From assembly GCA_950097015.1 (NCBI GenBank), contig CATNEN010000037.1:62001-126000 (forward strand): DNA of 64,000 nucleotides. Reading direction: 5' to 3'. The notes below the pieces were generated by a model that worked only from the letters and a program-made list of their open reading frames with translations, did no database searches and was not told the DNA's origin. The DNA comes from Macrostomum hystrix (Eukaryota; Animalia; Platyhelminthes). Below are positions 24,830 to 51,000 of this stretch, piece after piece. The first letter of the stretch is position 1, and each line of letters begins with the position of its first letter. The translations under genes were made by a program, and so were the position numbers.

Positions 24830-26370
24830 ACTGTGTTAGCCCCAGATTACCTAAATTATACTGTGTTAGCCTTTGATTACCCCAACTGTGTTAGCCTTTG
24901 ATTACCCCAACTGTGTTAGCCTTTGATTACCTCAACTGTGTTAGCCTTTGATTACCCCAACTGTGTTAGCCTTTGATTACCCCAACTGTGTTAGCCTTTG
25001 ATTACCCCAACTGTGTTAGCCTTTGATTACCCCAACTGTGTTAGCCTTTGATTACCCCAACTGTGTTAGCCTTTGATTACCCCAACTGTGTTAGCCTTTG
25101 ATTACCCCAACTGTGTTAGCCTTTGATTACCCCAACTGTGTTAGCCTTTGATTACCCCAACTGTGTTAGCCTTTGATTACCCCAACTGTGTTAGCCCCAG
25201 ATTACCCCAACTGTGTTAGCCTTTGATTACCCCAACTGTGTTAGCCTTTGATTACCCCAACTGTGTTAGCCTTTGATTACCCCAACTGTGTTAGCCTTTG
25301 ATTACCCAACTGTGTTAGCCTTTGATTACCCCAACTGTGTTAGCCTTTGATTACCCCAACTGTGTTAGCCTTTGATTACCCCAACTGTGTTAGCCTTTGA
25401 TTACCTCAACTGTGTTAGCCTTTGATTACCCCAACTGTGTTAGCCTTTGATTACCCCAACTGTGTTAGCCTTTGATTACCCCAACTGTGTTAGCCTTTGA
25501 TTACCCCAACTGTGTTAGCCTTTGATTACCCCAACTGTGTTAGCCTTTGATTACCCAAACTGTCTTAGCCTTTGATTACCCCAACTGTGTTAGCCTTTGA
25601 TTACCCAACTGTGTTAGCCTTTGATTACCCCAACTGTGTTAGCCTTTGATTACCCCAACTGTGTTAGCCTTTGATTACCCAAACTGTCTTAGCCATTGAT
25701 TACCTCAACTGTGTTAGCCCTTGATTACCTCAACTGTGTTAGCCTTTGATTACCTCAACTGTGTTAGCCTTTGATTACCTCAACTGTGTTAGCCTTTGAT
25801 TACCCCAACAGTGTTAGCCTTTGATTACCTCAACTGTGTTAGCCTTTGATTACCCCAACAGTGTTAGCCTTTGATTACCTCAACTGTGTTAGCCTTTGAT
25901 TACCCCAACTGTGTTAGCCCTTGATTACCTCAACTGTGTTGGCCTTTGATTACCCCAACTGTGTTAGCCCCAGATTACCTAAATTATACCGCGTTAGCCT
26001 ATGATTACCCCAACTGTGTTAGCCTTTGATTACCCCAACTGTGTTAGCCCCAGATTACCTAAATTATACCGTGTTAGCCTATGATTACCCCAACTGTGTT
26101 AGCCCTTGATTACCCCAACTGTGTTAGCCTTTGATTACCCCAACTGTGTTAGCCCCAGATTACCTTAATTATACCGTGTTAGCCTATGATTACCCCAACT
26201 GTGTTAGCCCCAGATTACCTAAATTATACCATGTTAGCCTATGATTACCCCAACTGTGTTAGCCTTTGATTACCTCAATTATCTCGACCGTGTTAGCTTA
26301 TGATTACCCCAATTATCCCGACCGTGTTAGTCTATGATTACCCCAATTATCCCGACTGTGTTAACACGGC
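24830..26370. repeat. 25-bp tandem satellite (CTGTGTTAGCCTTTGATTACCCCAA), about 60 copies, intergenic
   Basis: Period 25 read directly; variant units (CCCAGATTACCTAAATTATACC) cluster at both edges. Confidence 0.97.
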
Positions 26371-26962: not shown

Positions 26963-29900
26963 ATGCGATGCTTTGGAAATCTTCTATGGCTGCTGCTGCT
27001 GCTGCTGCTGTGCGCGCAGTCAACTCTGGCTGCGAGTGTGTCCAGGGCTGCCGGCTTCAACAATATTGGCATCAGCAGCGGAAATCTTCCAGAGGGACTC
27101 ACTCAGTCAGGTGAGAATCGTTTTGGCAGTTAGCTTTAACTGTAGCCCAGTTGTTGCTGGTAGGCAGGTTGAGTAGGGAAAGCAGATTGGGTATGGAAGG
27201 CAGATTGGGTATGGAAGGCAGGTTGGGTAGGGAAGGCAGATTGGGTAGGGAAGGGAGATCGGGTAGGGAAGGCAGATTGGGTATGGAAGGCAGGTTGGGT
27301 AGGAAAGGCAGATTGGGTAGGGAAGGCAGATTGGGTAGTGAAGGGAGATTGGGTAGGGAAGGCAGGTTGGGTAGGGAAGGCAGGTTGGGTAGGGAAGGCA
27401 GGTTGGGTAGGGAAGGCAGATTGGGTAGGGAAGGGAGATTGGGTAGGGAAGGCAGATTGGGTAGGGAAGGCAGATTGGGTAGGGAAGCCAGATTAGGTAG
27501 GGAAGGCAGATTGGGTAGGGAGGGCCGATTGGGTAGGGAAGGGAGATTGGGTAGGGAAGGCAGATTGGGTAGGGAAGGCAGATTGGGTAGGGAGGGCCGA
27601 TTGGGTAGGGAAGGGAGATTGGGTAGGGAAGGCAGATTGGGTAGGGAAGGCAGATTAGGATTTGGAAGGGAGGGCAGATTGGGTAAGCAGATCGGGTAGT
27701 GAAGGGAAGGATAGACACGTGAGGCAGTGGAATCGCTATCAGGTATTTAATTACAGCAGAGTAGCATGAAAATGTGAACGCTATTTTTCTAATCAGAATA
27801 AATGAAAATTAGATGAGCTAAATTCTGCGATCTGATGAATTGCTGCTCATGTCTCGAGTTTATTGTAGAAATGACTCAAGAATGACAGTCAAAGTAGATT
27901 CACATGGATTGCTGTTGCTTTATGCTGAGCGGTGCTTGGCATTTTTACATTTCTGGCGTTTTGGTTGTCATGGAAATACCCCGGCGAATTGTTTTTTTCT
28001 CTCGCTTTCCTCGGTTTTTTTTAACCCCGATATCTCTGCTCAACCCGCACATTCTGCGGAGATGGGACTGGGGGAGAAGAGGAGCGGCTCACTGGTGGGG
28101 TGGGGCTGGGAGGAATTTTTCAATTCGATTTTAAAGTGGCAACTCGAGACAATGAGTCAGCCGCTCCCGGCTTCTAACTGCAAGCGGCAAGCAATGATCC
28201 TTAGCATTTGCTACTCAATTTCTGCTCTGCTGCTGCTGCCGACGTTGCTTCTGGAAAACGGTAAGTCTCCTTTTGAGTACATAATCTGTACAATTGAATC
28301 TGGTGTCTGTCAGATGGAATCTGGTGTCTGTCAGATGGAATCTGGTGCCTGTCAGATGGAATCTGGTGTCTTTCAGACGGAATCCGGTGTCTGTCAGATG
28401 GAATCTGGTGTCTTTCAGACGGAATCCGGTGTCTGTCAGATGGAATCTGGTGCCTGTCAGATGGAATCTGGTGTCTGTCAGATGGAATCTGGTGCCTGTC
28501 AGATGGAATCTGTTGCCTGTCAGATGGAATCTGGTGTCTGTCAGATGGAATCTAGTGTCTGTCAGATGGAATCTGGTGCCTGTCAGATGGAATCTGGTGC
28601 CTGTCAGATGGAATCTGGTGCCTGTCAGATGGAATCTGGTGCCTGTCAGATGGAATCTGGTGCCTGTCAGATGGAATCTGGTGCCTGTCAGATGGAATCT
28701 GTTGTCCGTCAGACGGAATCTAGTGTCTGTCAGATGGAATCTGGTGTCCGTCAGACGGAATCTGGTGTCTGTCAGATCGTATTCAAACGGTCCAGTTTGA
28801 CATCGCAGGCATCGCCACGGCCAGCCCATGCGGCACCAACTGGACCTACGATAGCGCCATCGGCTGGTGCCTGAGGCAGTACCAGCTGAAGCTGAACTGG
28901 ACGGACGCCAGGGCCTACTGCGACAGCCAGCGTGGCGCGGCTGTGGGCGCCAGAACTGCCGGATCTCGACTGGGAACTGCGAACTTCGCGAACGAGTCAG
29001 CCGCTATGAGGCAATTTCTGACCCGGCTGGGCAACTATGCGGACATCTGGGTGGCCGGCAGACGAGGTGGGTGTCCGGATCGTTGGTTTGAGGTGTCCGG
29101 GGCAAACTATATTAAATTTAATGAAAAAAAACTATTTTTCAGAGAGCGCAAGCTCGCCCTACCTATGGATTGATCGTTCGCCGCCAAACAATGTGACCTC
29201 CAGTTGGACGGCAAATCCAGGAAATAAAAATTGCATCTACATGTCACTGGTAGACTCAATGGACGGCTCAGAGTGGAGAACAGAAGTACTTCTGAGCACA
29301 GCCGATTGTTCAGAAACCAAGCGATTTCTCTGCTACTACGAAGGTGCGGAAGTAATGATCAGTTAGTCTAGTGTCAGTTAACATTCATTATCAGTTCCTA
29401 ATCATCCCCAGATCAGGTCCTCATGATTCTCAGACCAGGATCTTACGATCCTGAGACCAGTTTCTCATGATGCTCATATCAGGTTCTCATGATTCTCAGA
29501 CCAGGTTCTCATGTGTCAGACTAAGTTCTCATGATTCTCATATCAAGTTCTCACGATTCTCATATCAAGTTCTCACGATTCTCATATCAAGTTCTCACGA
29601 TTCTCATATCAGATTCTCATGATACTCATATCAGGTTCTCATGATACTCATATCAGGTTCTCATGATACTCGTATTAGGTTCTCAGGATTCCCATATCAG
29701 GTTCTCATGATTCTCATATCAGGTTCTCATGATTCTCAGACCAGGTTCTCATGATGTCAGACCAGGTTCTCATGATGTCAGACCAGGTTCTCATGATGTC
29801 AGACCAGGTTCTCATGATGTCATACCAGGTTCTCATGATGTCAGACCAGGTTCTCATGATGTCAGACCAGGTTCTCATGATGTCAGACCAGGTTCTCATG

Positions 29901-32900
29901 ATGTCAGACCAGGTTCTCATGATGTCAGACCAGGTTCTCATGATGTCAGACCAGGTTCTCATGATGTCAGACCTGGTACTCATGCCCTGGCAAATCCGGT
30001 ATTTGCAGCCAAAAGTTGCAATCTGCTCAATCTGGTGGGCTACAATCCGGACTCCATGAACCTCCAGCCGCGGGCCGCTCACATCGGCGAAGCCACAGTC
30101 GCCAACTGTCGCGAAGGCTACTACCGCCGCTCGGCAATGGAAGCGGCCGCCTTGGCCGCAGTGTTTGGCAGCAGGCTGCTCACAACGACAGCTTCTCCGG
30201 ACAATCTGCCAGCGCCTAACAGCGTCAACTGCACGGACGCTGCACGCAGCGACGATCCAGAACTGGTGTCGCCGACTTGGATTCAGGGCACCATCGAACA
30301 GTGTCTGCGTGAGTGCCACGAAAGACTATTTTTGGATTGGAGAGAAAATAGACCCTACACAGCCTACTAAAAGTAGACGAAAAGCTAAATAAAAAGGGAT
30401 GTCAACTAAGGGCTCTAGAGGTCAACTAGAGGTCAATCCTAGAACCAAACCGACTGAGATCAGTAGCTGGTCAATCAAGGTTAACCACTCTGGCACTCAC
30501 CTCCCTCGCATAGCCTGATATCTCGGCTCTCCCGCAGTGGTTGGCTGTCCAATCGACCCCCTGATCGAGCTGGGCATCGACAACTCCCTGGCCTTCAGCG
30601 ATGCCCTGACAAAAACCGGCTACAAGTTCGGGGAGGGCTTCAACGTGACCTGCAAGCACGGCTACGTGGCCTCGGCGGATCCCAGCTCCAAAGTGGCCAG
30701 GGTCACCTGCTTCCAGGATCCCAGCCTGCCCTGGCTCGGCCTCTGGCTGCCTTCGGCTTCGAATGTCTGCGCTCCGATCAAATGCACCGACATTCGCACA
30801 GTGCTGGCCAACTATAGCGGAGTGCACCCCGCCAAGGCCTACAACCAGGAACTGAACCGCTGGTTTTCGGAGCTGGAGGTCAACAGATTCTCTACTTATT
30901 CGTCGGAGGTGTACATCACCTGCAACTCGGTCGGCTTGTTCTTCCAGGACCAGAAATACGAGAGACAGCTGGCCTGTCTGGCCGAGAATGACTCCAGCAC
31001 AACGGCCAACTGGGTGGGCGTTCGGGGCACATTCAGCATTGGAAACGTCATTCAGAATATTCGCTGCATTGGTGAGTCCATCAAGAGCATGGTCCTGTTT
31101 TTGTTATCATGGGGGTGCAAATAGTACGACAAGCCTCCCAAGTCTTCTCTCCTCTTAACAAAAGCCACAAATATTGGCTTTCTATTGAGTGTAATGTTAG
31201 TTTTTATATTATTGAACCAATATCGGTTGTCGTTCTGAGCAGGGCCTTCGACAGAAATAATCGCTGAATATCTCGACAATGCTGACGTCGGACGGCATTG
31301 AAAGTTAGTTCATCGTGAAGGGCCGAAAAGTTGAATACAATGTGGTGGACTTTAATCGGTCATTCGGTTTGGGAGCTATCGGCACTGGGTGTTAACGTGG
31401 TCCTGGAGATAACGTGTTCTCAATACTGTTAATCTGAGCTAAGGATTTTTGGTCCGAGAGTGGCCTATTTTTCTAAGCTTTATTTTTCCCAATATTAAAA
31501 TACTTTTTTGCAGAGGTGGTTTGCAACCTGGTGGACCTATTCCATCTCATGGAGGAAGGCGGCTCAGTGGTGGACCTACTGGTTGGCTACCACATCAACG
31601 AGGGCATTATGATGTATGACGCTCGAACCAATACGCTGAACAATCTCACCCGATTCCAAATGAGCTCAGTTGGTTCCCTGCTATTTGGCAGCTATATTTC
31701 TGTCACCTGTCCACCAGACAGACTATTTGTGCAGTCTGGCACAGACCAGATCAATCTAGTTCTTAACCTGGTTCAAATGACCATTACCTGCTCCAAGACT
31801 GGCAAATGGAATCAAACGATTGGAATGTGCATTGGTGAGTAGTGAAATTTAATTCTAGCTTACTTAAGGCTAGATTAATGATGCCAGCATTTTAGGTGTG
31901 ATTTCTATTGGCTGACAAAGGATAGAGTTGTAGCTCAGTTCCGATTGGCTGATGGGGTAAAGAGTTTTAGCGCGATATTTATTGGCTTAGAGGTAGAAAG
32001 TTTGGGCACGATTTCTATTGGTTGATAAGAGATAAAATTGACGCTCAGTTTTGATTGGCTGATGGGGGTGACGAGTTTAAGCGTGTTTTTTGTCAGAGAA
32101 GGGGCAGAAAAGTTAGCACAGGATTTCGATTGGTTGATGGTGGGGTGGATTGAATTAAAGTAATGCTTTCGATTGGTCGATACTAAGGTTGGTCAGAAAG
32201 TTAAGCACTAATGTTTTCAGTAAAGGAACACCTCTGTTTGCTTTCCAGAGAAGACAGCCGCAATTCAACTGTCGGGCCGACAGAAGCAATACGTTCCACC
32301 GGCTAAGGAGGCCACAGCAGCTTGGCAGATGGGCATGGTCACCATCAGCATAGTGATTGTGTTCTTCGCTTGCATAGTGATTCTAGATCTGGCCACTATT
32401 AAGCGAGATTTCAGCCTGCTCAAGACTAACGTGTTCTATCTGAGAATGCGACTAAAGCAGATTTAAATTCGGCTAGTCGAAGAAACAATATTATTGATCG
32501 AGAGGAAACAAAAACGTCAAAGTTTTATTAAAATCCTACTTTAAAATCCTACTACCGCCGAAATAAAAAAAAAATCTTAAATATCCTTATCCCAAATTAT
32601 CTAAATATACGGTACAATCATATTTCCTATAGAAACACTCTTTTAGATGAAACTGCCTTCGCAATTGCAGCTATCCAGTATTGAGAGTTTTGTCTTGCTT
32701 ATTTTCTGTGCTCTTATTTCAGAATATGTTTCGTCTATTTTAACTGTAATTAAAAAATTCAATTCTAAATGCATATCTTTATTTAAACATGCTTTGCAGG
32801 CAGGCTCAGAGCGTTTCTAGTGTGCCGGAAGGAGTGCATTGCCAAGTGTGACCGACTCGTGTATATTTACTCAGAGAAGAAGGTGAGTAAGCGATTTTTA

Positions 32901-34644
32901 TCGATTTGTAACAATTTCTTAGAAGGTTCTATGATTGGTCGCTGACAAACAATCTGTAGCCAATCAAATTTTAAAGGTTGATTAAAACTTAAGTTGGTTC
33001 CTAATATTTTTTGTATTACATGTCGATCCAACACTTGAAATGTAGTATCTAAATTATCTAAAATAATTTTTTAGGAGTTCTGCCACGAATGCCTGAAGCA
33101 ATGCATCTCGGCTGTGGTGCAGCAGGCGCGCAGTTTAGGGGTGAGTCACCAATTCTTAAACTATCCGAGTCTATAGAATATGTGTGAATCAAGAATATGT
33201 GTGAATCTAGAATATGTGTGAATCTAGAATTTGCGTGAATCTAGAATATGTGTGAATCTAGAATATCTGTGAATCTAGAATATGTGTGAATCTAGAATAT
33301 CTGTGAATCTAGAATATGTGTGAATCTAGAATATGTGTGAATCTAGAATATCTGTGAATCTAGAATGCCTGTGAATCTAGAATATGTGTGAATCTAGAAT
33401 TTGCGTGAATCTAGAATGCCTGTGAATCTAGAATATCTGTGAATCTAGAATATGTGTGAATCTAGAATATGTGTGAATCTAGAATATGTGTGAATCTAGA
33501 ATATGTGTGAATCTAGAATATCTGTGAATCTAGAATGCCTGTGAATCTAGAATATGTGTGAATCTAGAATTTGCGTGAATCTAGAATGCCTGTGAATCTA
33601 GAATATCTGTGAATCTAGAATATGTGTGAATCTAGAATATCTGTGAATCTAGAATGCCTGTGAATCTAGAATGCCTGTGAATCTAGAATGCCTGTGAATC
33701 TAGAATATCTGTGAATCTAGAATATCTGTGAATCTAGAATATCTGTGAATCTAGAATATTTGTGAATCTAGAATATCTGTGAATCTAGAATATCTGTGAA
33801 TCTAGAATATCTGTGAATCTAGAATATCTGTGAATCTAGAATACCTGTGAATCTAGAATATGTGTGAATCTAGAATATGTGTGAATCTAGAATATCTGTG
33901 AATCTAGAATATCTGTGAATCTAGAATACCTGTGAATCTAGAATATGTGTGAATCTAGAATATGTGTGAATCTAGAATATCTGTGAATCTAGAATATCTG
34001 TGAATCTAGAATATCTGTGAATCTAGAATATCTGTGAATCTAGAATATCTGTGAATCTAGAATATCTGTGAATCTAGAATACCTGTGAATCTAGAATATC
34101 TGTGAATCTAGAATATCTTTGAATCTAGAATATCTGTGAATCTAGAATATCTGTGAATCTAGAATATCTGCGAATCTAGAATACCTGTGAATCTAGAATA
34201 TCTGTGAATCTAGAATACCTGTGAATCTAGAATATCTGTGAATCTAGAATATCTGTGAATCTAGAATATCTGAGAATATAGAATATCTGTGAAGCATGTT
34301 CAACTTAAATTCTCCACCCACAGGTGGACCTGAACGAGGCTGACAGCAGCCTGGAGCCGCAGCATCGACCCCAGATGTTCTCTGACTCGGCCTCCTTGTC
34401 GACATCAGCCGCAGCGTTTGGCATTGGCGGCGGTGGTCGTCGCGAGCGTCGCGATAAGGACAGGGACAGGCAGCGCGAGGAGCGGCGGCGCAAGCGACGT
34501 CGTCAGCGTCAGCGGGAGAGGGAGAGGGAGAGAAACAGCCGTAAACGACGTCGCGGCGCCGAAGACGGTGGAGGAGCAGCTGGCGGAAGCGGCGGCGCAG
34601 CGGCAGCTCAGGGCGGCCTGCTGAAGAACTGCATCGTGCACTGA
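26963..34644 (+). CDS. Small secreted 6-Cys protein with Arg/Glu-rich tail (205 aa); exons 26963-27110, 32800-32882, 33075-33140, 34324-34644
   Basis: Exon 1 MRCFGNLLWLLLLLLLCAQSTLA... ends G|GTGAGA (phase 1). Exons 2-4 have canonical AG/GTGAGT ends and phases 1-0, 0-0, 0-stop that join without stops: ...GRLRAFLVCRKECIAKCDRLVYIYSEKKEFCHECLKQCISAVVQQARSLGVDLNE... Linkage of exon 1 to exon 2 across the lectin gene is inferred. Confidence 0.6.
27160..27700. repeat. 18-bp G-rich minisatellite (GGGTAGGGAAGGCAGATT), about 29 copies, intronic
   Basis: Direct reading; source of the spurious GREGRL / PYPICL ORFs. Confidence 0.97.
28194..32466 (+). CDS. Type I membrane protein: signal peptide, C-type lectin domain, four sushi/CCP-like domains, TM, short tail (632 aa); exons 28194-28260, 28809-29066, 29143-29343, 30009-30308, 30538-31071, 31514-31834, 32249-32466
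   Basis: All six introns GT-AG and phase 1; internal exons are multiples of 3 (258, 201, 300, 534, 321). CTLD motifs CGTNW..WCL..WTDARAYC..L..IWVAG..W.DRS..C..W..DCSETKRFLC. Sushi-like NCREGY..C..W..C, GEGFNVTCKHGY, ITCSKTGKWNQTIGMC. TM WQMGMVTISIVIVFFACIVIL; stop TAA at 32464-32466. Confidence 0.85.
28296..28776. repeat. 21-bp minisatellite (GAATCTGGTGCCTGTCAGATG), about 23 copies, fills intron 1 of the lectin gene
   Basis: Direct reading; lies between donor 28261 and acceptor 28808. Confidence 0.97.
29400..29975. repeat. 21-bp minisatellite (TCAGACCAGGTTCTCATGATG), degenerate at the left end, fills intron 3 of the lectin gene
   Basis: Direct reading; between donor 29344 and acceptor 30008. 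Confidence 0.95.
31240..31400. repeat. Dispersed repeat, second copy at about 37730-37880
   Basis: Shared GCTGAATATCT..ATGCT(G/A)ACGTCG(G/A)ACGGCATTGAAAGTTAGTT(C/T)ATCGT..GGTGGACTTT..AATCGGTCATTCGGTTTGG at both loci; class unknown. Confidence 0.75.
32562..32567 (+). terminator. Candidate polyadenylation signal AATAAA of the lectin-sushi gene
   Basis: AATAAA 95 nt after the stop codon and 230 nt before the next exon acceptor (32799). Confidence 0.45.
33175..34290. repeat. 17-bp minisatellite (GAATCTAGAATATCTGT), about 65 copies, fills intron 33141-34323
   Basis: Direct reading; each unit contains palindromic TCTAGA. Confidence 0.97.
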
Positions 34645-35486: not shown

Positions 35487-36764
35487 TTAACTAGCCTGCT
35501 GCGAAGCCTTAAAGGCCAAGTAGTTTGCCTCCTCTAGCTCCGTCATCAGCTTGTTCAGCGCGTAGATCTGGAATCGGCAACCAACAGCATCAGACAGCAG
35601 CCAACAGCATCAGACAGCAGCCAACAGCATCAGACAGCTACCAACAGCATCAGACAGCAGTCAACAGCATCAGACAGCAGTCAACAGCATCAGACAGCAG
35701 TCAACAGCATCAGACAGCAGTCAACAGCATCAGACAGCAGTCAACAGCATCAGACATCTGCCTACAGCATCAGACAGCTACCAACAGCATCAGACAGCAA
35801 CCAACAGCATCAGACATCTGCCTACAGCATCAGACAGCTACCAACAGCATCAGACAGCAACCAACAGCATCAGACAGCAGTCAACAGCATCAGACAGCAA
35901 AAACAGCATCAGGCAGCTACCAACAGCATCAGACATCTGCCAACAGCATCAGACAGCTACCAACAGCATCAGGCAGCTACCAACAGCATCAGACAGCTGC
36001 CAACAGCATCAGACAGCTACCAACAGCATCAGACAGCTACCAACAGCATCAGACAGAAACCAACAGCATCAGACTGAAGTCAGCAGCATCAGACAGCTAT
36101 CAACAGCACTAGACAGCTGCCAGCAGCATCAGACAGCACAACAGCATCAGACTGAAGTCAGCAGCATCAGACAGCTATCAGCAGCATCAGACAGCAACCA
36201 ACAGAATCAGACAGCAGCCAACAGCATCACACAGCTCACCTGACGCCTCTGCTGACACCGCTCCTGCGTCGCCCAGACGCTATCATTGGAGTCCATTGTC
36301 CAGCTGTTAGCCGCGCTGGACCAACGGCCAGCGACAGCAGTGGCTCCGCGTTGCGCGCCGGACCTCTCAGCGAAGCGTCTTGGAGGCGAACGCGACGCGC
36401 CGTAGACGCTGTTGAATTGCTCCATCGACTGCCGCTGCCGAATCAGCAGACTGCGAGACGGCGAAGATGACAAAAGCGGTGCGGCCGCAGACAATGTCGG
36501 CTGCTGGCGCAGTTTTGAGGACCTCGGCAGTGGCATGAGTGGCTGACGGTACTGGGGTTGCTGGGGCGGCAGCCTGTTGTTACTGACTGAATTCAATTCG
36601 ACAGTTGTCTCAGCTCTGCGCAACTGTGGCACACCTGCTGTTACTGACTGCGTTTTAGCTGTTAGCGTTTTCACCTGCTTGCGCTGCTGCTGCTGCTGCT
36701 GCTGCTGATAATGAGTTTTGCTGGGCCGGTACTCCAGCAGAAGCAGACGGGTGGCGCCGGACAT
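35487..36764 (-). CDS. SVBP: SVBP (small vasohibin-binding protein/CCDC23) motif protein with long low-complexity N-terminus, 201 aa; exons 36764-36240 and 35567-35487
   Basis: The splice CAG|GTGAGC to TTCCAG|ATC (phase 0) gives QERCQQRRQ-IYALNKLMTELEEANYLAF, matching the vertebrate SVBP core [30 protein letters not shown] as recalled. An in-frame stop just upstream supports ATG 36764. Confidence 0.75.
35578..36232. repeat. 20-bp minisatellite (CCAACAGCATCAGACAGCAG) forming essentially the whole SVBP intron
   Basis: Direct reading; same family as 38238-39075. Confidence 0.97.
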
Positions 36765-36866
36765 CCGATTTTAGCAACTGTCACTGCCCAGCAACTGAAA
36801 GCTGAGAACTACAGTTTAGATTTTTTAATACTCCATATTTAGTGATAAGCACCTGAGGATCTAGAG

Positions 36867-37525
36867 CAGGGGTCGGGAAACTTATTAGCTAGTGGGCCAA
36901 AAAGAGAACCTAAGAGAAGATAGCGGGCCGCATTGACTGTAGAAATATGAGAAAAGGGAGAGATAAGACACGGGAGAGATGAGACACGGGAGAGATAAGG
37001 CAGCGGAAAGATATAACGGCGGAGAGATGAGACACGGGAGAGATGAGACACGGGAGAGATGAGACACGGGAGAGATGAGACACGGGAGAGATGAGACAGC
37101 GGAGAGATGACACAAATGAGAGATGAGACCGAGGAGAGATGAGACCGAGGAGAGATGACACACAGGAGAGATGAGACCGAGGAGAGATGACACGCGGGAG
37201 AGATGAGACATGGGAGAGATTAGAAGGCGGAGAGATGAGACACAGGAGAGACGAGACAGCGGAGAGATGACACAAATGAGAGATGAGACCGAGGAGAGAT
37301 GAGACCGAGGAGAGATGACACACAGGAGAGATGAGACCGAGGAGAGATGACACGCGGGAGAGATGAGACATGGGAGAGATTAGAAGGCGGAGAGATGAGA
37401 CACAGGAGAGACGAGACAGGGGAAAGATGAAACAGGATACTGTAGGTGTCGGAAGGGGCAACGGGCCGGATTTGGGAGCTTCGAGGGCCGCATCTGGCCC
37501 GCGGTCCGGAGTTTGCCGACCCCTG
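36867..37525. mobile_element. Non-autonomous hAT (Charlie-like) MITE, 659 bp, with internal 16-bp minisatellite (GGAGAGATGAGACACG)
   Basis: TIRs CAGGGGTCGGGAAACT / AGTTTGCCGACCCCTG; perfect 8-bp TSD ATCTAGAG at 36859-36866 and 37526-37533. Confidence 0.92.
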
Positions 37526-38237
37526 ATCTAGAGCCTTGTTGCATTTCTTGTATGAGACTGCTAGGGGGTCAGCGCACCAAGGTCCCTGAGCCCGATTCCG
37601 CGGCGAGGCCACATTTATTTGGGGCATTTATTTCTCACAAGACATCGGCATCGTCGATATATTTAACGATTTTTGTCGAGGCAACTTAAACGCCATGGAG
37701 GTTCATACAGGAGCAATGTTAGCTGTCCTTTTCACCAGTGTCTTCGACAAGAACCGCTGAATATCTTGAAGATGCTAACGTCGAACGGCATTGAAAGTTA
37801 GTTTATCGTAAAGGGCAGAAAACTTTCTTCCATATGGTGGACTTTCCCGAAAATCGGTCATTCGGTTTGGTAGTGGGTATTCGCTTTCGTGAAGTAGGCA
37901 GTGGGTATTCGAAATATCCACTTGGTCTTTCACCTACGGGGGGGAAATAGGGTGGTCTTTGTACTTTTAATCAAGCTTCAAAAAAAGACGAAAGCAATAA
38001 CGAGTTCAAATTCATCCACCTGGGACTTGATTTGTGCACATCTATTTATGGCGCAGACAATAAATTAAACAAACAAATCAAAACGACAAAACACAAAAAT
38101 CTAACATGAAAACAACTGCGAATGACTTAAACTGAGCTGAAAGTATGAGCACAATATTGAAACAATTTGTAATACCGACTGACTGGAGCAACACCTGCCT
38201 ACAAAGAAGACTAAGCTAAATTATAGCTAAACTATAC

Positions 38238-39075
38238 AGCAACCAACAGCATCAGACCGCTGCCAACAGCATCAGACAGCAACCAACACCATCAGACAGC
38301 TACCAACAGCATCAGAACGCTGCCAACAGCATCAGACAGCAACCAACAGCATCAGACAGCAACCAACAGCATAAGACAGCTACCAATAGCCTCAGACTGC
38401 TGCCGACAGCATCAGACAGCAACCAACAGCATCAGACCGCTGCCAACAGCATCAGACAGCAACCAACAGCATCAGACAGCAACCAACAGCATCAGACAGC
38501 AACCAACAGCATCAGACAGCAACCAACAGCATCAGACAGCAACCAACAGCATCAGACAGCAACCAACAGCATCAGACAGCAACCAACAGCATCAGACAAC
38601 AACCAACAGCATCAGAACGCTGCCAACAGCATCAGACAGCAACCAACAGCATCAGACAGCAACCAACAGCATCAGACAGCAACCAACAGCATCAGACAGC
38701 AACCAACAGCATCAGAACGCTGCCAACAGCATCAGACAGCAACCAACAGCATCAGACAGCAACCAACAGCATCAGACAGCAACCAACAGCATCAGAACGC
38801 TGCCAACAGCATCAGACAGCAACCAACAGCATCAGACAGCAACCAACAGCATCAGACAGCAAAAACAGCATCAGACAGCTACCAACAGCATCAGACAGCA
38901 ACCAACAGCATCAGACAGCAAAAACAGCATCAGGCAGCTACCAACAGCATCAGACATCTGCCAACAGCATCAGACAGCAACCAACAGCATCAGACAGCTA
39001 CCAACAGCATCAGACAGCAGTCAACAGCATCAGACAGCAACCAACAGCATCAGGCAGCTACCAAAAGCTTCAGAC
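38238..39075. repeat. 20-bp minisatellite (AACCAACAGCATCAGACAGC), about 41 copies
   Basis: Direct reading. Confidence 0.97.
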
Positions 39076-39729
39076 AGAAACCAAGGGCATTGGGCTCGTA
39101 TGAACACCCATTTTTCATTTGCTGTAATCATGAGGTAAACAGTTATATTGCCGAATCAACTTATATTATTGAGCGCTAATATCTTTCGAATCGAATTGCT
39201 AAACTGCTTAACTTTTAAGCTTGATTTGGTCAAGAAGTCAGGAAACAGATATTGATTGCACGACATTTCTTGCTTGTTAATAAAAAATAAGCAAGTTATA
39301 ATAATTACACTACTGACCAGGCCGTAATAACTGAGTAGTGCATGAGACAAACTACATTTAATAAACAGGTTAACAAAAGGTATGTGACTACTTAACCTAC
39401 TAAAATGAGTATAAAGCACCAAAAAATTACTTTGACTCGATTTGATTTTTAAACGCCTGATGAAGCTGCACTGACTCTATTGAAGAACAAAAGCTGAAAA
39501 TCACATTTTCTCTTTCTCTAAAAATTGAGTAACTGTCATTAGGAAAAGCTAAAGCTTTTTCTATCGAAAAGCGAAAAACGAAAAAGTTCAATTGCGAAAA
39601 ATCACCCTTTGAGAGAAAGAGAAGTAAATATACTTTTATATCGCAAAAAAGTTACGCAACAGACAACCTAGTTACAATGGAATGTAGCCAGTGTTTTAGC
39701 TTGGCTTGCCAGTTAGTACTCGCTGTGTT

Positions 39730-42700
39730 TCAGAGTATCTCTTCACTGTTCCAGCCGTTGCGACCCGCTCCGAGACTTGAACCAACGACTGCAAATACAA
39801 AATTATTTTGAATTAAAAGTGCTGAGCTATTTAGATACTAACTGGGTCATTAAGGTACAAACTGGGTCATTGAGGTACAAACTGGGTCATTGAGGTACAA
39901 ACTGGGTCATTGAGGTACAAACTGGGTCATTGAGGTACTAACTGGGTCATTGAGGTACTAAATCGGTCATTGAGGTACTAAATCGGTCATTGAGGTACTA
40001 AATCGGCCATTGAGGTACTAACTTGGTCATTGAGGTACTAAATCGGTCATTAAGGTACTAAATCGGTCATTGAGGTACAAAATCGGTCATTGAGGTACTA
40101 AATTGGTCATTGAGGTACTAAATCGGTCATTTAGGTACTAAATTGGTCATTGCATGTACTAAATCGGTCATTGTAGGTACTAGCTGGGTCATTGTATATA
40201 TAAGCTGGGTCAGAGCTCACCGCCCGTGGTCTCCTTTGACGTCAGCGGCTGCTGTTTCGGCACTCGAAGGCCGCGGCCGCTGAGAAGACGCCGCAAGCTG
40301 CTACTGAGACCACCGCCAATGTGACCACCTGGCAACTGCTGCTGCTGCTGCTGCTGTTTGCCTGACAAAGCTGATGGTACAGCGGAATCACCACGCTCTG
40401 TGCTGACTGGTCGTTTGCTGCTGCTGCTACCGCCAGCACCGAATGCCTTCCGCAGTCGGCTGGCAAAACTGTGCGACCTGCCGGCTGCGGGCTTGACTGT
40501 CAGCGGGGATAAATTCGATGGGAGATTTTCGAGAAGGTGAGAAAATCGATGGGAGATTTTCGAGAAGGGAAGAAATTCGATGGGAGATTTTCGAGAAGGG
40601 AAGAAATTCGATGGGAGATTTTCGAGAAGGGGAGAAAATCGATGGGAGATTTTCGAGAAGGGAAGAAATTCGATGGGAGATTTTCGAGAAGGGGAGAAAA
40701 TCGATGGGAGATTTTCGAGAAGGGAAGAAATTCGATGGGAGATTTTCGAAAAGGGGAGAAATTCGATGGGAGATTTTCGAGAAGGGAAGAAATTCGATGG
40801 GAGATTTTCGAGAAGGGGAAAAATCGATGGGAGATTTTCGAGAAGGGGAGAAAATCGATGGGAGATTTTCGAGAAGGGAAGAAATTCGATGGGAGATTTT
40901 CGAGAAGGGGAGAAAATCGATGGGAGATTTTCGAGAAGGGGAGAAAATCGGGAAGAAATTCGATGGGAGATTTTCGAGAAGGGGAGAAAATCGATGGGAG
41001 ATTTTCGAGAAGGGGAGAAAATCGATGGGAGATTTTCGAGAAGGGGAGAAATAAGACTCTACATTTTTTAGAACGATCCCAGCTGTTGCTGACCTTTTGG
41101 CTTGGCACTGTTGCTTGGCTCCTGTGCATTGGACACCTAGTAATGGTTCAGATTTTGGATTTGAATGTTTTTATAGACGATTATCGACTTGCTTTAAGAC
41201 AATGAGCATTTGTGCTTTGACATGCTTATCAATGCAGAATAATATCTATCAATCTAGCACCACAACAGCAGCAGAGAGTGCAAGATGTTTAATCAATGCT
41301 TCTGTTTTCTAAGCACCAATAATTAATGGGATACATAGAAATATTATAGACAGAAAAAGTTAAGTCTTTTCAATCTAACTTCCTCGAAATATTCAGTTAT
41401 CACAATTTTCACAAAGAGTAACGTAAAATCGAATTTTTCCATTTTCCAACTTTAGGAAACATTTTGGAAAAAAAAACTAAAAAAGGTTAGCCTAGGAATC
41501 CTATTCTCACAAAAATCCCTATATTCACAAAAATCCCAATATTCACAAAAATCCCCATCATTTACAGAAATCCCAATATTCACAGAAATCCCATTATTCA
41601 CAGAAATCATCATAATTCAAAGAAATACACATTATACACAGAAATCCCCATTATTCACAGAAATCCCCAATATTCACAGAAATACCCAATATTCACAGAA
41701 ATCCCCATTATTCACAGAAATCCCATTATTCACAGAAATCCTAATATTCACAGAAATACCCAATATTCACAGAAATACCCAATATTCACAGAAATCCCCA
41801 ATATTCACAGAAATCCCCAATATTCACAGAAATACCCAATATTCACAGAAATCCCAATATTCACAGAAATCCCCATTATTCACAGAAATCCCATTATTCA
41901 CAGAAATCCCATTATTCACAGAAATCTCTGTATTCACAGTAATCACAGTATTCACAGAAATCTCTGTATTCACAGTAATCACAGTATTCACAGAAATCAT
42001 AATATTTACTGTAATCCCAATGCTCAAAGAATGCCAAGTGTCAGTGACCCAGCCGAAAGCTTCTATGTACAGCTTCTATGTACAGCTTCTGTGTACAGCA
42101 GTTCAGTTCATCGAACGCCACCACACTAACCCAAATTTTTAACCCATAAATCCACCCCAGGTACCTCACTTTAGCACGCCGGCAGCAATGTTTTTGGTGC
42201 AATAGCTTAATAAGACAAGAATTGTGCATATTCATTAACAGAGTATTTTTATTAATTAAAGTCGATTCACAAAGAACGACAGGCAAAGGACTGGTAGAGA
42301 CCTGGAACTGACAGCACTATTTAGCTTTGGACTCATGCTCAGATTCGATAAATCTTTAATACGTAAATATCACTTTTAAATAATATATAATTTAATTCAA
42401 ATAATATACGTTCCAGGAAACTACTGAAACCTTTTAATATTCGCTTTGAAATTTTATAGATCACGGTATGCAATAACAGAGATAAAAGAATACTTTAAGG
42501 AAAGTTTGACCGGCACGCCAGGTGGATGAGCAGGGGGGCAGGCGGGTGTGCTTCTCACCAAAGCATCAGCTGATCGATGCTGAACTTTAGCAGGGACGCT
42601 TGTCTGAGTCACTGGATACGATTCAACAAGTTATTAGAGATAAGATTGCCGTTAAAAATGGACCGCATCATTGTGTTCCTGTTAATAAACTGGACCGCAT

Positions 42701-45700
42701 CATTGTGTTCCTGTTAATAAACTGGACCGCATCATTGTGTTCCTGTTAATAAACTGGACCGCATCATTGTGTTCCTGTTAATAAACTGGACCGCATCATT
42801 GTGTTCCTGATTACAAACTGGACCGCATCATTGTGTTACTGATAATAAACTGGACCGCATCATTGAGCTCCCGATAATAAACTGGACCGCATCATTGTGT
42901 GCCTTATAATCAACTGGACCGCATCATTGTGTGCCTTATAATCAACTGGACCGCATCATTGAGCTCCCGATAATAAACTGGACCGCATCATTGTGTTCCT
43001 GATTATAAACTGGACCGCATCATTGTGTTCCTTATAATCAACTGGACCGCATCATTGTGTTCCTCAGTACAAACTGGACCGCATCATTGTGTTCCTCATT
43101 ATAAACTGGACCGCATCATTGTGTTCCTTATAATCAACTGGACCGCATCATTGTGTTCCTGATTATAAACTTGACCGCATCATTGTGTTCCTCATTACAA
43201 ACTGGACCGCATCATTGTGTTCCTGATTATACACTGGACCGCATCATTGTGTTCCTCATTACAAACTGGACCGCATCATTGTGTTCCTGATTATAAACTG
43301 GACCGCATCATTGTTTTTTATAAAATTATAGCTGAACTGTTTAGGAAATCGAATTTATATACAGGCTATGAGAGATATCAGGCATTGCCATAACGGTAGG
43401 CAGCAAAATTTATTAGTCAAGCGTAGAAGCTGATTGTTTGGCATGCGATAAGAAATCTCGCTAGCTATAAATTTTATAGCTCTAAAGCCAGCATATCGAT
43501 TTTTAATGCTCTGTAATGTTGATTTTAATAGTAATTTGTCGCACCATTATCGGAGGTACTAAATCAATGGTTGCCATGGAAACAGCGGGCAACATTTCGA
43601 TTGAAGAAGATTGACTGCTCTTCTGGCTAATAACAGAGTCGGATGGTGATTCCACTGCAATAATATCTGAAGGTGAAAGTTGGAAGTTTTCAAACCTGAA
43701 AACTTTGATGAATCATACATTTCGTAGTATCACTGCAATTACAAAAAATTACCGATAGTTTAAGCTGAACCGAATGCTTAAGTAGCGCATGCAATAACGC
43801 AGTCAATTGTTAGTTAGTTTTATTAGGCTTTAAACAAAACCTCTTTTCTGGCAAATACTAAGTTGAAGAGGCCGAGAACAACAAACAAAAATGTGTAGAA
43901 GAAACGTGCTTTACTATTTTCTGGCAGTTGTTCCATTTTTTAGACTATTTCTGCCACTATTTTGTCCTTACTAGAGCAGACAAATGCTCTCTTCGCTGTT
44001 TGACCAGCAAGTCAGGCCAATCGTCTGGCACAATCAGAGTCTCGACGGTCAGGTACAAGGCGCTTCCGACACCGCTGGGTTGGTCGCTGCTATTTCAGCT
44101 TGTTCATTGTAAATAGAAAAAAACATTCACGAAACTATTTAGAAATCGATAGATTTGTCATCATGCTACTGATCATTGAATGGCAAAAGTAGTATCTATT
44201 CAGTAATATATGTAGCTTGTTGTACGAGTATGTCGATACATATTCTTTTTGAAAAATGATACAAGAAAAAAATAAATAGCAATTGTGAACAATTCACTCT
44301 ACTATAAGTAGAACAGTGAGAAAATGTGATAAAAACGCATATAATTTGTATAACTCACCGCCAGTATCATCGCTATTCGTCTGATTTCGATCGACTTCTC
44401 GGTTGCTATGACTACGGGCTGGAGCCGAACCGCGCGGAGGAAAGTTTTTAAGCTGCTGCTGCTGCTGCTGCTGATGCTTATTCGCCGTCAGATCACCCAG
44501 AGCTCGAGACAAGGATGTGTCTGCATTATTTAAAAATAAGAATGTTGAGTTGAATTGAGAGTTGATAAATTTTTTTTCGACCATAATTAAATTATATAAT
44601 TATCATTGCATTTAGCCCATTTAAATAATTAGTGCTCGATTTTTATCTCTTAGGCATGCAAATAAATTTATCGCATTGTTTAAAAAAAGATCTCATGTTT
44701 TGATTGATGGGTAACATGCAAATAGGACAACGAGTTTACGAACACGTTAGTCAAACTTTTCATAACTTTTATAAAGACTAGGAAGCTCTTTGAAAAACAT
44801 TGAAAAATTAACTGGACCGCATCATTGTGTTCCTGATTATAAACTGGACCGCATCATTGTGTTCCTGATTATAAACTGGACCGCATCATTGTGTTCCTGA
44901 TTATAAACTGGACCGCATCATTGTGTTTCTGATAATCAACTAGACCGCATCATTGTGTTCCTGATTATAAACTGGACCGCATCATTGTGTTCCTGATTAT
45001 AAACTGGACCGCATCATTGTGTTCCTGATAATCAACTAGACCGCATCATTGTGTTTCTGATAATCAACTAGACCGCATCATTGTGTTCCTGATTATAAAC
45101 TGGACCGCATCATTGTGTTCCTGATTATAAACTGGACCGCATCATTGTGTTCCTGATTATAAACTGGACCGCATCATTGTGTTCCTAATATAATAAGCGA
45201 AACACTGAAGTCAGTATACATTTTTAGCATCAGTTATAAAATGGTAATAAATATGGAACGCTAATTTGCCCATCTAAAACCATTAATCAAACAAGAGAAC
45301 AAAACAGAAAAAGCAACCTATACTTCAGGAACCTGTAGTAACTCTAATACGATTATCACCGTTAGTACAGATATTAGCACCAGGGTACCATGAATAAAGC
45401 GAATCGATAAAATTGCATAGTCTAAGTTTAAAAAAAGCTTTTAAGCCCGTTAATCCGTTAGAATTCATTGCAGAATTAGCATTGCAACATGCGTATGATA
45501 TGAAATCCCCACAATTATTCCTAATCTGCCTTCTTTAAACTGTTTATTTGTGCAAATGAGAAAAATAACGCCTTTCAAAGGCCTTTCAAAGAATCATCCC
45601 TGAGAACCGTGATTCAACACTGAAGCCCCCTTTTTACGCCTCCCTTATCAAACATGGTTAAATAACCCACAGGAGCGACGTATTATGCTGCCCATCGATC

Positions 45701-48033
45701 TGTCGGAGGAGGATGGGGTGGGGCTCGGGGCCGCATGCTCGGCTCCGATTGGCTGCCGGCGATGGCTACAATAAATATCGTCCGAGAAGCGCACGGACTT
45801 TGTTGACTGACCGCCAACGCTTAGAACTCCTGCGAGCGAGCGAGCGGGCGAGCGTTCAGAGTCTGGGAACTTGGACCAATCAGATACTAGGCCGATAATT
45901 TGCTTGACCAATCAGACACTAGGCTGCTTATCTACGAGTTACTGACCAATTACACACTAGGCTGCTTATCTGATTGACCAATCAAGCACCAGGCTGCTTA
46001 TCTAATTAACCAATCAAGTACTAGGCTGCTTATCTGATTGACCAATCAGACTCTTGGCTACAGCTATGCTTGACCAATCAGACTCTTGGCTACAACTATG
46101 CTTGACCAATCAGACTCTTGGCTACAACTATGCTTGACCAATCAGACTCTTGGCTACAACTATGCTTGACCAATCAGACTCTTGGCTACAACTATGCTTG
46201 ACCAATCAGACTCTTGGCTACAACTATGCTTGACCAATCAGACTCTTGGCTACAACTATGTTTGACCAATCAAACTCTTAACTCCAATGATCTATTAAAA
46301 CACCAGTTTAGAGTTTTCATGAAGCAAAACAGTGCCAATCATGCATAATTGCTAAATAAACTTTACAGTCTGATCATAGAGTTTAACATGCCCGCCTGCC
46401 AGTAGATCATATTCCTTTACACCAACCTCCGTTAATCCTATCGGATCTCGCCAGTTCCAAATCTGTGGCTGAAGGCCATTCAACGCTAGCCGGCGACACA
46501 AACAGAAACTCGGCCGTCAAAGTGGCTGTCGGCAAGCCGGCAGTCGTCGGATTGTTCGACGGGTCGTTGATAGCAACGCGAGACGGTCGCCTCAGCGGCT
46601 GCATGATGCGGGCACCCAGAGGGGGTAGGTCGCATAGGCGAACACTGGCTGAGCCCAGAAGGCTGTCAGACCTACCCGACCGGTCGAACACGTGCAGCGA
46701 CAGGCGAGCGGAGTGTCTGTTCAGATCGCTGGCGATCGCGTGGGTGGGGATTTCAATAGGTAGGGAATTCTAGGAATATTCTAGTCAGTGTGGATTTTTA
46801 GGGATTCTACTACTTCGGATTATAATCAGTGCGGATTCTACTGAGTGGGGATTCTATTTGATGGGGATTTTAATGAGTGGGGATTACAATGAGTAGGGAT
46901 TATTTTTAGTGGAGATTATTTTTAGCTCGTAGTGGGGAATATTTTTACTGAGGATTATTTTTAGTGGGGATTTCTCAAGCGGGGATTCTACTAAGTTAGG
47001 ATTCTGCTGAGAGGGATTATACTGAGTGGGGATTCTACTGAGTGGGGATTATACTGAGTGGGGATTCTACTGAGTGGGGATTCTACTGAGTGGGGATTCT
47101 ACTGAGTGGGGATTCTACTGAGTGGGGATTATACTGACCTAGGATTTTACTGAGTGGGGATTATACTGAGAGGGGATTCTACTGGGTGGGGATTCTACTG
47201 ACCTGGGATTCTACAGGTTGGGGATTCTACAGAGTGGGGATTCTACAGAGTGGGGATTCTACTGACCTGGGATTCTACTGGTTGGGGATTCTACTGGTTG
47301 GGGATTCTACAGAGTGGGGATTATACTGAGTGGGGATTCTACTGACCTGGGATTCTACTGGTTGGGGATTCTACTGAGTGGGGATTCTACTGAGTGGGGA
47401 TTCTACTGACCTGGGATTCTACTGGTTGGGGATTCTACTGGTTGGGGATTCTACAGAGTGGGGATTCTACTGAGTGGGGATTCTACTGACCTGGGATTCT
47501 ACTGGTTGGGGATTCTACTGAGTGGGGATTATACTGAGAGGGGATTCTAGGACTTGCAGAATAGGGATTCTACTGAGTGGGGATTCTACTGACTGGGGAT
47601 TATACTGAGTGGGGATTTTACTGAGTTGGGATTTTGCTGAGAGGGGATTCAAGGTTATGGATTATGGAATGGGGATTTAACTGTGTTAGACGCATAATCC
47701 AGTCTACTAGCAGTGCAGATTTTCTCGCAGCCTGTAACTCACAACATGTAGTGCTGATCCCAATAGGGATTAGCCGAGCCGAAAACGCTGCCAGTCACGT
47801 GACGCTGGTAGGGCTCATCCAGTTCCAGACAGGCGTAGGCGTTCAACTGGCGTTGCGGCGCAAAGTTGGTCGCCTCGCCGACAGCAACTGGCTGTGTCGG
47901 GGTTTCGGCTGAAGGCAAGAGCAAGCTGGATGCTTTGATTACCTTCACCAGCAGGCGAGCATTGCCTAATGATGTAGATTTTTGTTGATTGGCAACCGTT
48001 GCCAGGGGAAGAGGAGTCATTTTCATTGTTGCT

Positions 48034-48078
<45 letters not shown>

Positions 48079-51000
48079 TTATGGTGATGATGATGATGAG
48101 GCTGATGCCGGCGGGTAGCTCCAGTAGTGACGGTAGTTACCTGAGAATTCCGAAACTACAATGTTCAACCTCTTGTAATGCGATTCCTGTAATGTGACTC
48201 CTGTAATGTGACTCCTGTAATGTGACTCCTGTAATGTGACTCCTGTAATGTGACTCCTGTAATGTGACTCCTGTAATGTGACTCCTGTAATGCGATTCCT
48301 GTAATGTGACTCCTGTAATGTGACTCCTGTAATGTGACTCCTGTAATGCGATTCCTGTAATGTGACTCCTGTAATGTGACTCCTGTAATGTGACTCCTGT
48401 AATGTGACTCCTGTAATGTGACTCCTGTAATGTGACTCCTGTAATGTGACTCCTGTAATGTGACTCTTGTAATGCGATTCCTGTAATGTGACTCCTGTAA
48501 TGTGACTCCTGTAATGCGATTCCTGTAATGTGACTCCTGTAATGTGACTCTTGTAATGCGATTCCTGTAATGTGACTCCTGTAATGTGACTCCTGTAATG
48601 CGATTCCTGTAATGTGACTCCTGTAATGTGACTCCTGTAATGCGATTCCTGTAATGTGACTCCTGTAATGTGACTCCTGTAATGCGACTCCTGTAATGTG
48701 ACTCCTGTAATGCGACTCCTGTAATGTGACTCCTGTAATGTGACTCTTGTAATGCGACTTTTATTATACCTACCTCATGTTGATTTTGCTGCTGCTGCTG
48801 CTGCTGCTGCTGCTGTGCATTAGTATCGGTGGCCTGACTTTTCGCCGCAGAAGCCGCAGGCGCACCAGTTTCAGCCATAGACAGTAAGGTGACCGCTTTC
48901 TCCAGAGCAGCCCTAGTGAGCTTCGAGATAACAGCCAAGTCGGACTCGCTGATGCCTGCATGGCAACTGCCAGTCTTCAACGCCTTGGCTTCGACGCGAA
49001 GGCTGGGCCGACTCGACAGCCGAAGCGAGGCGTCAAAGCCACGTGGGCAAAGGCGCAGATTTAGGGAGGCCTTGAATGTAAATATTGTTTTGTTGGCAAT
49101 GAGCTGACATGTTAGACACAAGCGAAACTGTTAGATATGTTAGACACAAGCTCACATGTTAGACACAAGCTCACATGTTAGACACAAGCTCACATGTTAG
49201 ACACAAGCTCACATGTTAGACACAAGCTCACATGTTAGACACAAGCTCACATGTTAGACACAAGCTCACATGTTAGACACAAGCTCACATGTTAGACACA
49301 AGCTCACATGTTAGACACAAGCTCACATGTTAGACACAAGCTCACATGTTAGACACAAGCTCACATGTTAGACACAAGCTCACATGTTAGACACAAGCTC
49401 ACATGTTAGACACAAGCTCACATGTTAGACACAAGCTCACATGTTAGACACAAGCTCACATGTTAGACACAAGCTCACATGTTAGACACAAGCTCACATG
49501 TTAGACACAAGCTCACATGTTAGACACAAGCTCACATGTTAGACACAAGCTCACATGTTAGACACAAGCTCACATGTTAGACACAAGCTCACATGTTAGA
49601 CACAAGCTCACATGTTAGACACAAGCTCACATGTTAGACACAAGCTCACATGTTAGACACAAGCTACAGGAAGACTTACCTCAGCTTCAACATCCAGCAG
49701 GGCGACTTCGCACGAAGTTTCGTCCCCAACGCCGTTGGAACGCAGCTTGGCCAGCAGGCGAACCTCGTCCGCCCGCAGCTTCAGCCGGATCTGCAGCTCG
49801 TGAGTGTCAACGCAATGTCCGGCCCCGGCCGATTGAATCTGTGGCGGCAGACTGCCGACTAGTAGGGCTTCGAATCGCAACGGCTGTGAGAAATTAAAAC
49901 AAAAATCAACTCTCAACAAAGCGTTTTGACATTCGAATATGAAAAAAACATCGTGTTTTCGAGAGCAGAAAGCAGAAAAAGAAATTAATTCTTTCAATAT
50001 CAATTATACGATCTAAAAAAACATTGCGAATTGTCTTCCAACCCCAACGCAACAGACTAAACTATTAACGCACCTGGGACCAGTCAGACATGGAAGAGTG
50101 ACACTGCCATCCCTGTCTGTCCGAACTGTTATCCCAGACCTACAGACCTGTATCGTCTTAATCTGAAGGATTGCATTCCATAATCTTGGGTGGAGGAGAG
50201 AAAAGTTGGTCGCGGTGTTATTTCTGTCCACAATTAGTGCAGTCCAAGAAATGGCTGCAATCCGTCTATAAGAAGGAGCTCAATGGTTCACTCCGATTCT
50301 GCCTAGCAACCACCTGACTAATTAACTCAGAGCCCTTCCGAGTGATTCAGTTTTGAACCAACCTTCTAGTAGCTGCATGCGTGCTGAAGGCATTGTATTT
50401 TTGCCTGTACAGTTTTCTTTCTATCTGCACTGCTGAAATCATGTGGTTGTCGACATATCACATGCTTCAATCATGTCACACATACTGTTATCATGTCACA
50501 CACACTGTTATCATGTCACATATACTGTTATCATGTCACACATACTGTTTTCATGTCACACATACTGTTATCATGTCACATATACTGTTATCATGTCACA
50601 CATACTGTTTTTATGTCACACATACTGTTATCATGTCACACTACTGTTTTCATGTCACACATACTGTTATCATGTCACACTACTGTTATCATGTCACACT
50701 ACTGTTATCATGTCATACTACTGTTATCATGTCACACTACTGTTATCATGTCACACTACTGTTATCATGTCACACTACTGTTATCATGTCACACACATAC
50801 TGTTTTCATGTCACAAATACTGTTATCATGTCACACATACTGTTATCATGTCACACATACTGTTATCATGTCACATATACTGTTATCATGTCACACACAT
50901 ACTGTTTTCATGTCACACATACTGTTATCATGTCACACATACTGTTATCATGTCACATATACTGTTATCATGTCACACATACTGTTTTCATGTCACACAT

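Follow-up and report, generated by a model that had tools for sequence, protein, structure and literature searches.

Host/nested pairs make up more than 1/10 of genes in mouse and human, with the two orientations about equally common (PMC11694760). In Drosophila melanogaster, 71% of guests lie on the opposite strand; of those on the host strand, 72.5% lack introns, and the median among the others is one (Lee and Chang 2013, PMC3814207). This depletion of same-strand, intron-containing guests has been attributed to selection against mis-splicing (PMC3814207), and same-strand nesting is thought to be costly, as the splice and poly(A) signals of the guest can derail the host. Here we describe a 64,000-nucleotide stretch of the Macrostomum hystrix genome (the window, G000:C37:62001-126000, whose numbering is used throughout), in which the region 26963-34644 quite probably holds two separate plus-strand genes, a seven-exon lectin-type guest lying wholly inside intron 1 of a four-exon host that would encode a small secreted protein. 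The preliminary description of this DNA had offered a complete seven-exon receptor gene in a same-strand first intron as the simplest reading, and this is supported by an intron-empty paralogue of the host and by inner exons that make up a complete member of their family. Its view that such nesting is rare fits Drosophila, where same-strand guests are depleted and mostly intronless, but not mammals, where same-strand nesting is common.

The plus strand from 26.8 to 34.8 kb was translated and every exon border tabulated. All eleven exons had canonical AG/GT borders and the expected phases, with the exon ends 29066, 31071 and 32882 lying 1-2 bases from those implied by the preliminary description. 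The table bore out its account of two signal-peptide exons ending in phase 1 (26963-27110 and 28194-28260), five phase 1-1 exons between them and the 3' exons, and two 3' ends starting in phase 1, one a transmembrane exon followed by AATAAA (32249-32466) and the other a series of cysteine-rich exons (32800-34644). The features are:

26963-27110, plus strand: host exon 1, with start codon, signal peptide and 25 more residues to LPEGLTQS; ends in phase 1 at donor GTGAGA
27111-32799, plus strand: putative host intron 1, 5,689 nucleotides, containing the entire nested gene
28194-28260, plus strand: nested exon 1, a short signal-peptide exon ending in phase 1 at the consensus donor GTAAGT
28809-29066 and 29143-29343, plus strand: nested exons 2 and 3, a single C-type lectin-like domain interrupted by a 76-nucleotide intron
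30009-30308, 30538-31071 and 31514-31834, plus strand: nested exons 4-6, four cysteine-bounded modules, with a clear Sushi/CCP match only in the last (exon 6)
32249-32466, plus strand: nested exon 7, with stalk, transmembrane helix, short basic tail and stop codon
32527-32567, plus strand: putative poly(A) signals of the nested gene, ATTAAA at 32527 and AATAAA at 32562, 3' of the stop codon of the transmembrane exon
32800-32882, plus strand: host exon 2, 83 nucleotides, phase 1 to 0, first arm of the cysteine hairpin (C-x3-C-x3-C)
33075-33140, plus strand: host exon 3, 66 nucleotides, second arm of the hairpin (C-x2-C-x3-C)
34324-34644, plus strand: host exon 4, with a disordered stretch, an Arg/Lys-rich block, the C-terminal LLKNCIVH and a stop codon
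35276-35281, plus strand: first canonical AATAAA 3' of the host stop codon, presumably the one used

The coding sequence of the guest (28194-32466) and its poly(A) signals, up to 32567, lie fully within host intron 27111-32799, and every exon is on the plus strand. In the 2.8 kb upstream of 28809, only two ATG-started hydrophobic open reading frames (ORFs) end at a phase-1 GTRAG donor, and these are 26963-27110 and 28194-28260; the latter has alternative in-frame start ATGs at 28152 and 28062. We also looked for a start exon nearer to 32800, and rejected the sole candidate found, an ORF of 10 codons that has a poor donor and lacks a signal peptide.

The guest ORF runs to 632 codons and a stop over its seven exons, and codon-usage likelihoods gave a clear signal for the lectin exons. 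When the 177-residue exon 30540-31070 was used as a query, an exhaustive HMMER search matched just 16 proteins. The sequence-specific matches all came from flatworms (Macrostomum, Fasciola, Heterobilharzia, two monogeneans and two tapeworms), and the last two of the 16 were a sea-urchin sushi-repeat protein and an unnamed protein from ENA. Macrostomum lignano, Fasciola and Heterobilharzia have full-length homologues of about 600-630 residues. These begin with a short signal peptide, continue with a C-type lectin-like domain and several cysteine-bounded modules, and end with a highly conserved stalk, transmembrane segment and basic tail. They have 19-37 residues ahead of the first cysteine and never carry the outer, host exons. 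Guest exons 2-7 tile these proteins collinearly, and 32249-32466 aligns to the C-terminus of all of them. As the guest exons tile full-length family members end to end, 28194-32466 is a complete gene, predicted to encode a 632-residue type-I membrane protein with a signal peptide, a C-type lectin-like domain, four cysteine-bounded sushi/CCP-like modules, a transmembrane helix and a short tail. The guest is closest to two fragments from M. lignano, with 62% and 91% identity, and the second of these (P0002) joins the equivalents of exons 5, 6 and 7. The M. hystrix genome also contains several diverged guest paralogues. A candidate short signal exon with a phase-1 donor precedes the lectin-domain exon in two of the four that were scanned, and its likeness is to 28194-28260, not to 26963-27110.

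The lectin and sushi identity of the middle exons, suggested in the preliminary description, appears to be real but divergent. Searched singly, the window exons fell below the Pfam cut-offs: PF00059 reached 16.4 bits against a cut-off of 22.6, the domain being split over two exons that were each searched apart, and PF00084 reached 15.5 and 15.7 bits against 20.7. Homologues scored above the same cut-offs, with 39.8-44.5 bits for Sushi PF00084 and, in the Fasciola protein, 29.8 bits for PF00059. A profile of the guest family matched solved structures of complement receptor 1 (CCP modules, E 2e-26) and of C-type lectins (E 4.5e-7, through profile positions 27-164), and the ESM Atlas gave 0.96 to Sushi clusters.

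A search of the M. hystrix genome itself found a second copy of host exons 2 and 3, 81% and 59% identical to those in the window (the 81% over 27 residues), on the minus strand of another contig. The gene model around it is:

G000:C38:15855350-15859396, minus strand: host paralogue, four exons of 199, 83, 66 and 213 nucleotides, intron phases 1, 0, 0

Exons 2 and 3 are 83 and 66 nucleotides long in both copies, and the intron positions and phases (1, 0, 0) are alike. In the paralogue, exon 1 codes for a signal peptide, and its last residues, LPEGISQS, lie directly at a phase-1 donor, the point at which window exon 1 ends in LPEGLTQS, so that the two copies have the ending LPEG(L/I)(T/S)QS in common. 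The score of the alignment between the mature parts of the two exon-1 copies was reached by 6 of 2000 shuffles. The best tblastn match of 26963-27110 in 19.5 kb of the paralogous locus is exactly paralogue exon 1, and its reading frame is the best of six in codon usage. Exon 4 has in both copies a (V/I)D(L/F)N start, a polybasic block and the terminal eight residues LLKNCIVH, while the middle parts are no longer recognisably alike. In the exon 4 region of the window every one of the six frames is open, so an ORF there is by itself little proof.

Intron 1 of the paralogue (2,725 nucleotides, AT-rich, with an even GC content of 0.36) is empty: neither strand has an ORF of at least 62 residues, and nothing in it resembles a lectin exon. 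The homologue of 26963-27110 can therefore splice only to the hairpin exon, and the structure of the paralogous gene assigns 26963-27110 to the small gene. The comparison thus shows that the flanking exons, 26963-27110 and 32800-34644, belong to one predicted gene. Its product, of about 205 residues, would consist of a signal peptide, a cysteine hairpin, a polybasic stretch with many convertase-type sites and a C-terminus that is conserved and contains the seventh cysteine. Host exons 1 and 4, searched against the genome, detected no second copy and missed the paralogue, because those parts have diverged, while a profile of the hairpin exon found only the two copies. With no other genomic copies, the outer exons (signal exon, hairpin exon 2 and exon 4) do not adjoin any other lectin paralogue. 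Searches of Pfam, PDB and the ESM Atlas matched no sequence to the cysteine hairpin, and single host exons gave nothing usable in the latter two. A word search with exon 4 also found no match, but carries little weight, since only proteins of 58-185 residues were visible to it and the expected product has 186-205. The small secreted cysteine-hairpin family is so far known only from the M. hystrix genome.

The neighbouring gene supports the relationship between the two loci. A multi-exon gene for a C2-domain protein lies on the minus strand at 35490-49100, convergent on the 3' end of the small gene. It too is duplicated, with a paralogue at G000:C38:15.84-15.855 Mb in the same arrangement and 53-65% identity in three exons. 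As this gene was duplicated along with the small gene, the two loci are true paralogous segments, and the two regions look like old segmental duplicates.

The paralogue also bears on the possibility that the locus is a combinatorial one, in which the lectin exons can be joined to either signal exon and exon 6 can continue into either 3' end. Such a locus would make, at appreciable levels, membrane-bound and soluble forms of the lectin and a fusion of lectin and hairpin, in addition to the small protein or in its place. All the junctions involved are phase 1, every combination is in frame, and 28809 is the first in-phase acceptor downstream of the donor at 27110. Phase 1 is the usual phase of signal-peptide and extracellular-module exons, so compatibility is expected by default and is alone no evidence for a designed combinatorial use. 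None of the full-length homologues retrieved had a hairpin tail or a long first exon, all stopping after the transmembrane tail. In the paralogue the outer exons form a self-contained gene, and in the window the GTAAGT donor at 28260 is both nearer and stronger than the donor at 27110. We consider a combinatorial locus of this kind unlikely. There is a somewhat smaller chance that the nest is a gene fusion in progress, in which regulated cross-splicing would give a soluble lectin with a cysteine-hairpin end or a membrane lectin with the host signal exon. If so, it would be a live example of exon shuffling by same-strand nesting, with the intron-empty paralogue as the ancestral state.

Over the 49 codons of the hairpin, window and paralogue differ by 26 synonymous and 19 non-synonymous changes, on about 30 and 117 sites respectively. 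The proportion of non-synonymous sites that differ (pN) is 0.16, against 0.87 for synonymous sites (pS), which are saturated. Exon 2 alone has 18 synonymous and 6 non-synonymous differences. The 60 nucleotides of intron on either side of the hairpin exons are 25-38% identical, which is chance level. The low pN relative to pS, together with the chance-level identity of the flanking introns, indicates that the hairpin exons are coding, in the stated frame, and constrained; judged by these counts, they are under strong purifying selection.

This pattern has to be set against the idea of a relic host, silenced after the lectin gene landed in its intron, with its exons intact by chance or with 32800-34644 kept only as an alternative end of the lectin gene. 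Same-strand guests with introns are deleterious to their hosts in Drosophila (PMC3814207), and the second, functional copy could take over. Yet the start codon, the signal peptide, all six splice sites, the open frame, the six hairpin cysteines and the C-terminal motif are intact. As non-coding DNA at the same divergence is at chance identity, decay would be visible unless the insertion was very recent. A relic host seems to us very unlikely.

A further reading is a single pre-mRNA with two cistrons, the lectin gene and 32800-34644, of which the second would receive a spliced leader (SL) at 32800. In Macrostomum, a 35-nucleotide spliced leader ending in ATG is found on 20-30% of mRNAs (PMC8629364, PMC10468722), and operons with gaps of less than 1 kb account for about 15% of the genes of M. 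lignano (PMC8629364). M. hystrix trans-splices, and SL RNA genes were found in its genome. The gap from the lectin stop codon to 32800 is 333 nucleotides, and its acceptor, TTGCAG (32794-32799), agrees with the trans-acceptor motif in the literature (PMC8629364). The obstacle is the reading frame. In the SL RNA genes of M. hystrix the leader ends in ATG directly before the GTAAG donor; joined to 32800, that ATG reads GCA GGC TCA GAG CGT TTC TAG, a stop after six codons. The conserved hairpin frame is in phase 1 and has no ATG before 34375 (66 codons), and in the paralogue this frame is provided from the upstream signal exon. A leader-capped message therefore cannot encode the part under selection. 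Though motif and gap both fit, we ruled out the operon on reading frame and leave it next to no probability.

The reading that we prefer, two genes with the lectin gene nested in the first intron of the small one, has several points against it. The splice from 27110 to 32800 is inferred, not seen. A search for conserved promoter blocks upstream of the two exon-1 copies found nothing that scored above shuffles. Codon-usage scores were uninformative both for the short hairpin exons, of which there are two, and for the GC-rich basic part of exon 4. The selection on the hairpin spans all the time since the old duplication and so cannot show that the window copy has been used since the arrival of the guest. 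Finally, the intron contains seven in-phase exons and a poly(A) site, which the host has to cope with, and such an arrangement is selected against in Drosophila (PMC3814207).

How two nested genes on one strand might both be expressed can be sketched. The guest would have a promoter of its own, at roughly 27.7-28.15 kb, and its own poly(A) site, which host transcripts would read through. Upstream of 28194 the sole trans-acceptor-type motif is 437 nucleotides away and is followed by out-of-frame ATGs, which weakly favours a separate promoter. Each guest acceptor would be paired with its own nearer donor, the first being the perfect GTAAGT at 28260, so that the guest introns are removed within the host intron and the host donor at 27110 is left free to pair with 32800. 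Mis-pairing would stay in frame because every junction is phase 1, and would give secreted or membrane chimeras instead of broken messages, which may make the nesting tolerable.

Some other features of the region and of the genome were recorded. Nearly every intron or spacer in the region contains a minisatellite not shared with the others, the units being 16-25 bp long and present in 23-66 copies with 79-93% matches, and the translations of these repeats give long false ORFs in several frames. The arrays are:

24860-26278: minisatellite
27162-27656: minisatellite
28296-28777: minisatellite
29409-29984: minisatellite
33174-34293: minisatellite
35577-36235: minisatellite
36947-37434: minisatellite

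Towards the right end of the window there is a 346-residue open frame at 60848-61885. At 57443-59690, on the minus strand, lie three adjacent open frames of 224-248 residues whose translations, when read, suggest a hAT/ZBED-type transposase. The canonical leader end occurs in the genome in 19 exact copies, mostly about 11.7 kb apart on contigs C15, C17 and C42, with one on C1. A tandem array at G000:C39:12,667,898-12,753,120 contains more than 70 units of about 927 bp with a second spliced-leader-like 3' end (...CTCTCTTTTTTGCATG directly before GTAAG) and may be a second class of SL RNA. On the minus strand at G000:C37:188173-188198, 62 kb to the right of the window, a leader-like 24-mer lies in ordinary DNA with no GTAAG donor after it, and may be the retrocopy of a trans-spliced mRNA. 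Among the M. lignano relatives of the guest family, the model P0006 (UniRef100_A0A1I8JEL3) runs from the transmembrane exon of a lectin paralogue into unrelated cysteine-rich sequence downstream, and probably reflects two neighbouring genes on one strand that were merged in annotation.

Both proteins can be compared with known families. The host hairpin is likely to be helical and stapled by three disulfides. Its cysteine spacing (i, i+4, i+8 and j, j+3, j+7) presumably fits two antiparallel disulfide-linked helices, as in plant alpha-hairpinins, scorpion Cs-alpha/alpha toxins and twin-CX3C proteins, from all of which the M. hystrix hairpin differs in having three pairs instead of two. The guest falls among flatworm membrane proteins that combine a C-type lectin-like domain (CTLD) with CCP modules and a transmembrane segment, and that are annotated only as 'Sushi domain-containing protein', such as M. 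lignano PAA63236.1 (P0004) and Fasciola gigantica TPP65518.1 (P0008). It shares with them the domain order and the stalk, transmembrane and tail motif YVPPAKEA ... LDLATI.RD ... LLKTNL. A single guest exon matches them with E-values of 1e-13 to 1e-20, and identity to the full-length paralogues is about 30%. The guest is also like selectins and other vertebrate membrane receptors with CTLD and CCP domains in having an N-terminal C-type lectin-like domain, sushi-type repeats, one transmembrane helix and a short tail. It differs in that the lectin domain has diverged strongly and, in the window, scores under the Pfam cut-off, and only the last repeat is a good Sushi match. Selectins have an EGF domain after the lectin domain and before the CCP repeats; here, Pfam reported no EGF-type family for any exon or homologue. 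The likeness is one of domain architecture, with no sign of orthology. The comparison fixes the annotation of two uncharacterised families, a flatworm-wide lectin-sushi membrane protein, found also in flukes, tapeworms and monogeneans, and a small secreted cysteine-hairpin protein.

As a flatworm that trans-splices and is amenable to laboratory culture, and with an old, guest-less paralogue of the host, M. hystrix offers a way of measuring the cost of nesting directly, by comparing expression and splicing fidelity of the host copies. Like the same-strand nested genes already catalogued (PMC3814207, PMC11694760), the guest is complete, with its own start, stop and poly(A) signal, and occupies one intron near the 5' end of its host, and as in other catalogued pairs, host and guest are unrelated in sequence. 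In Drosophila guests with many introns are strongly depleted, whereas this one has six, each sharing the phase of the host intron. The pair thus belongs to a class that is already known, in which a same-strand guest with so many introns is unusual, and what sets it apart from the catalogued nested genes is an intron-empty host paralogue in the same genome, which serves as a natural control.

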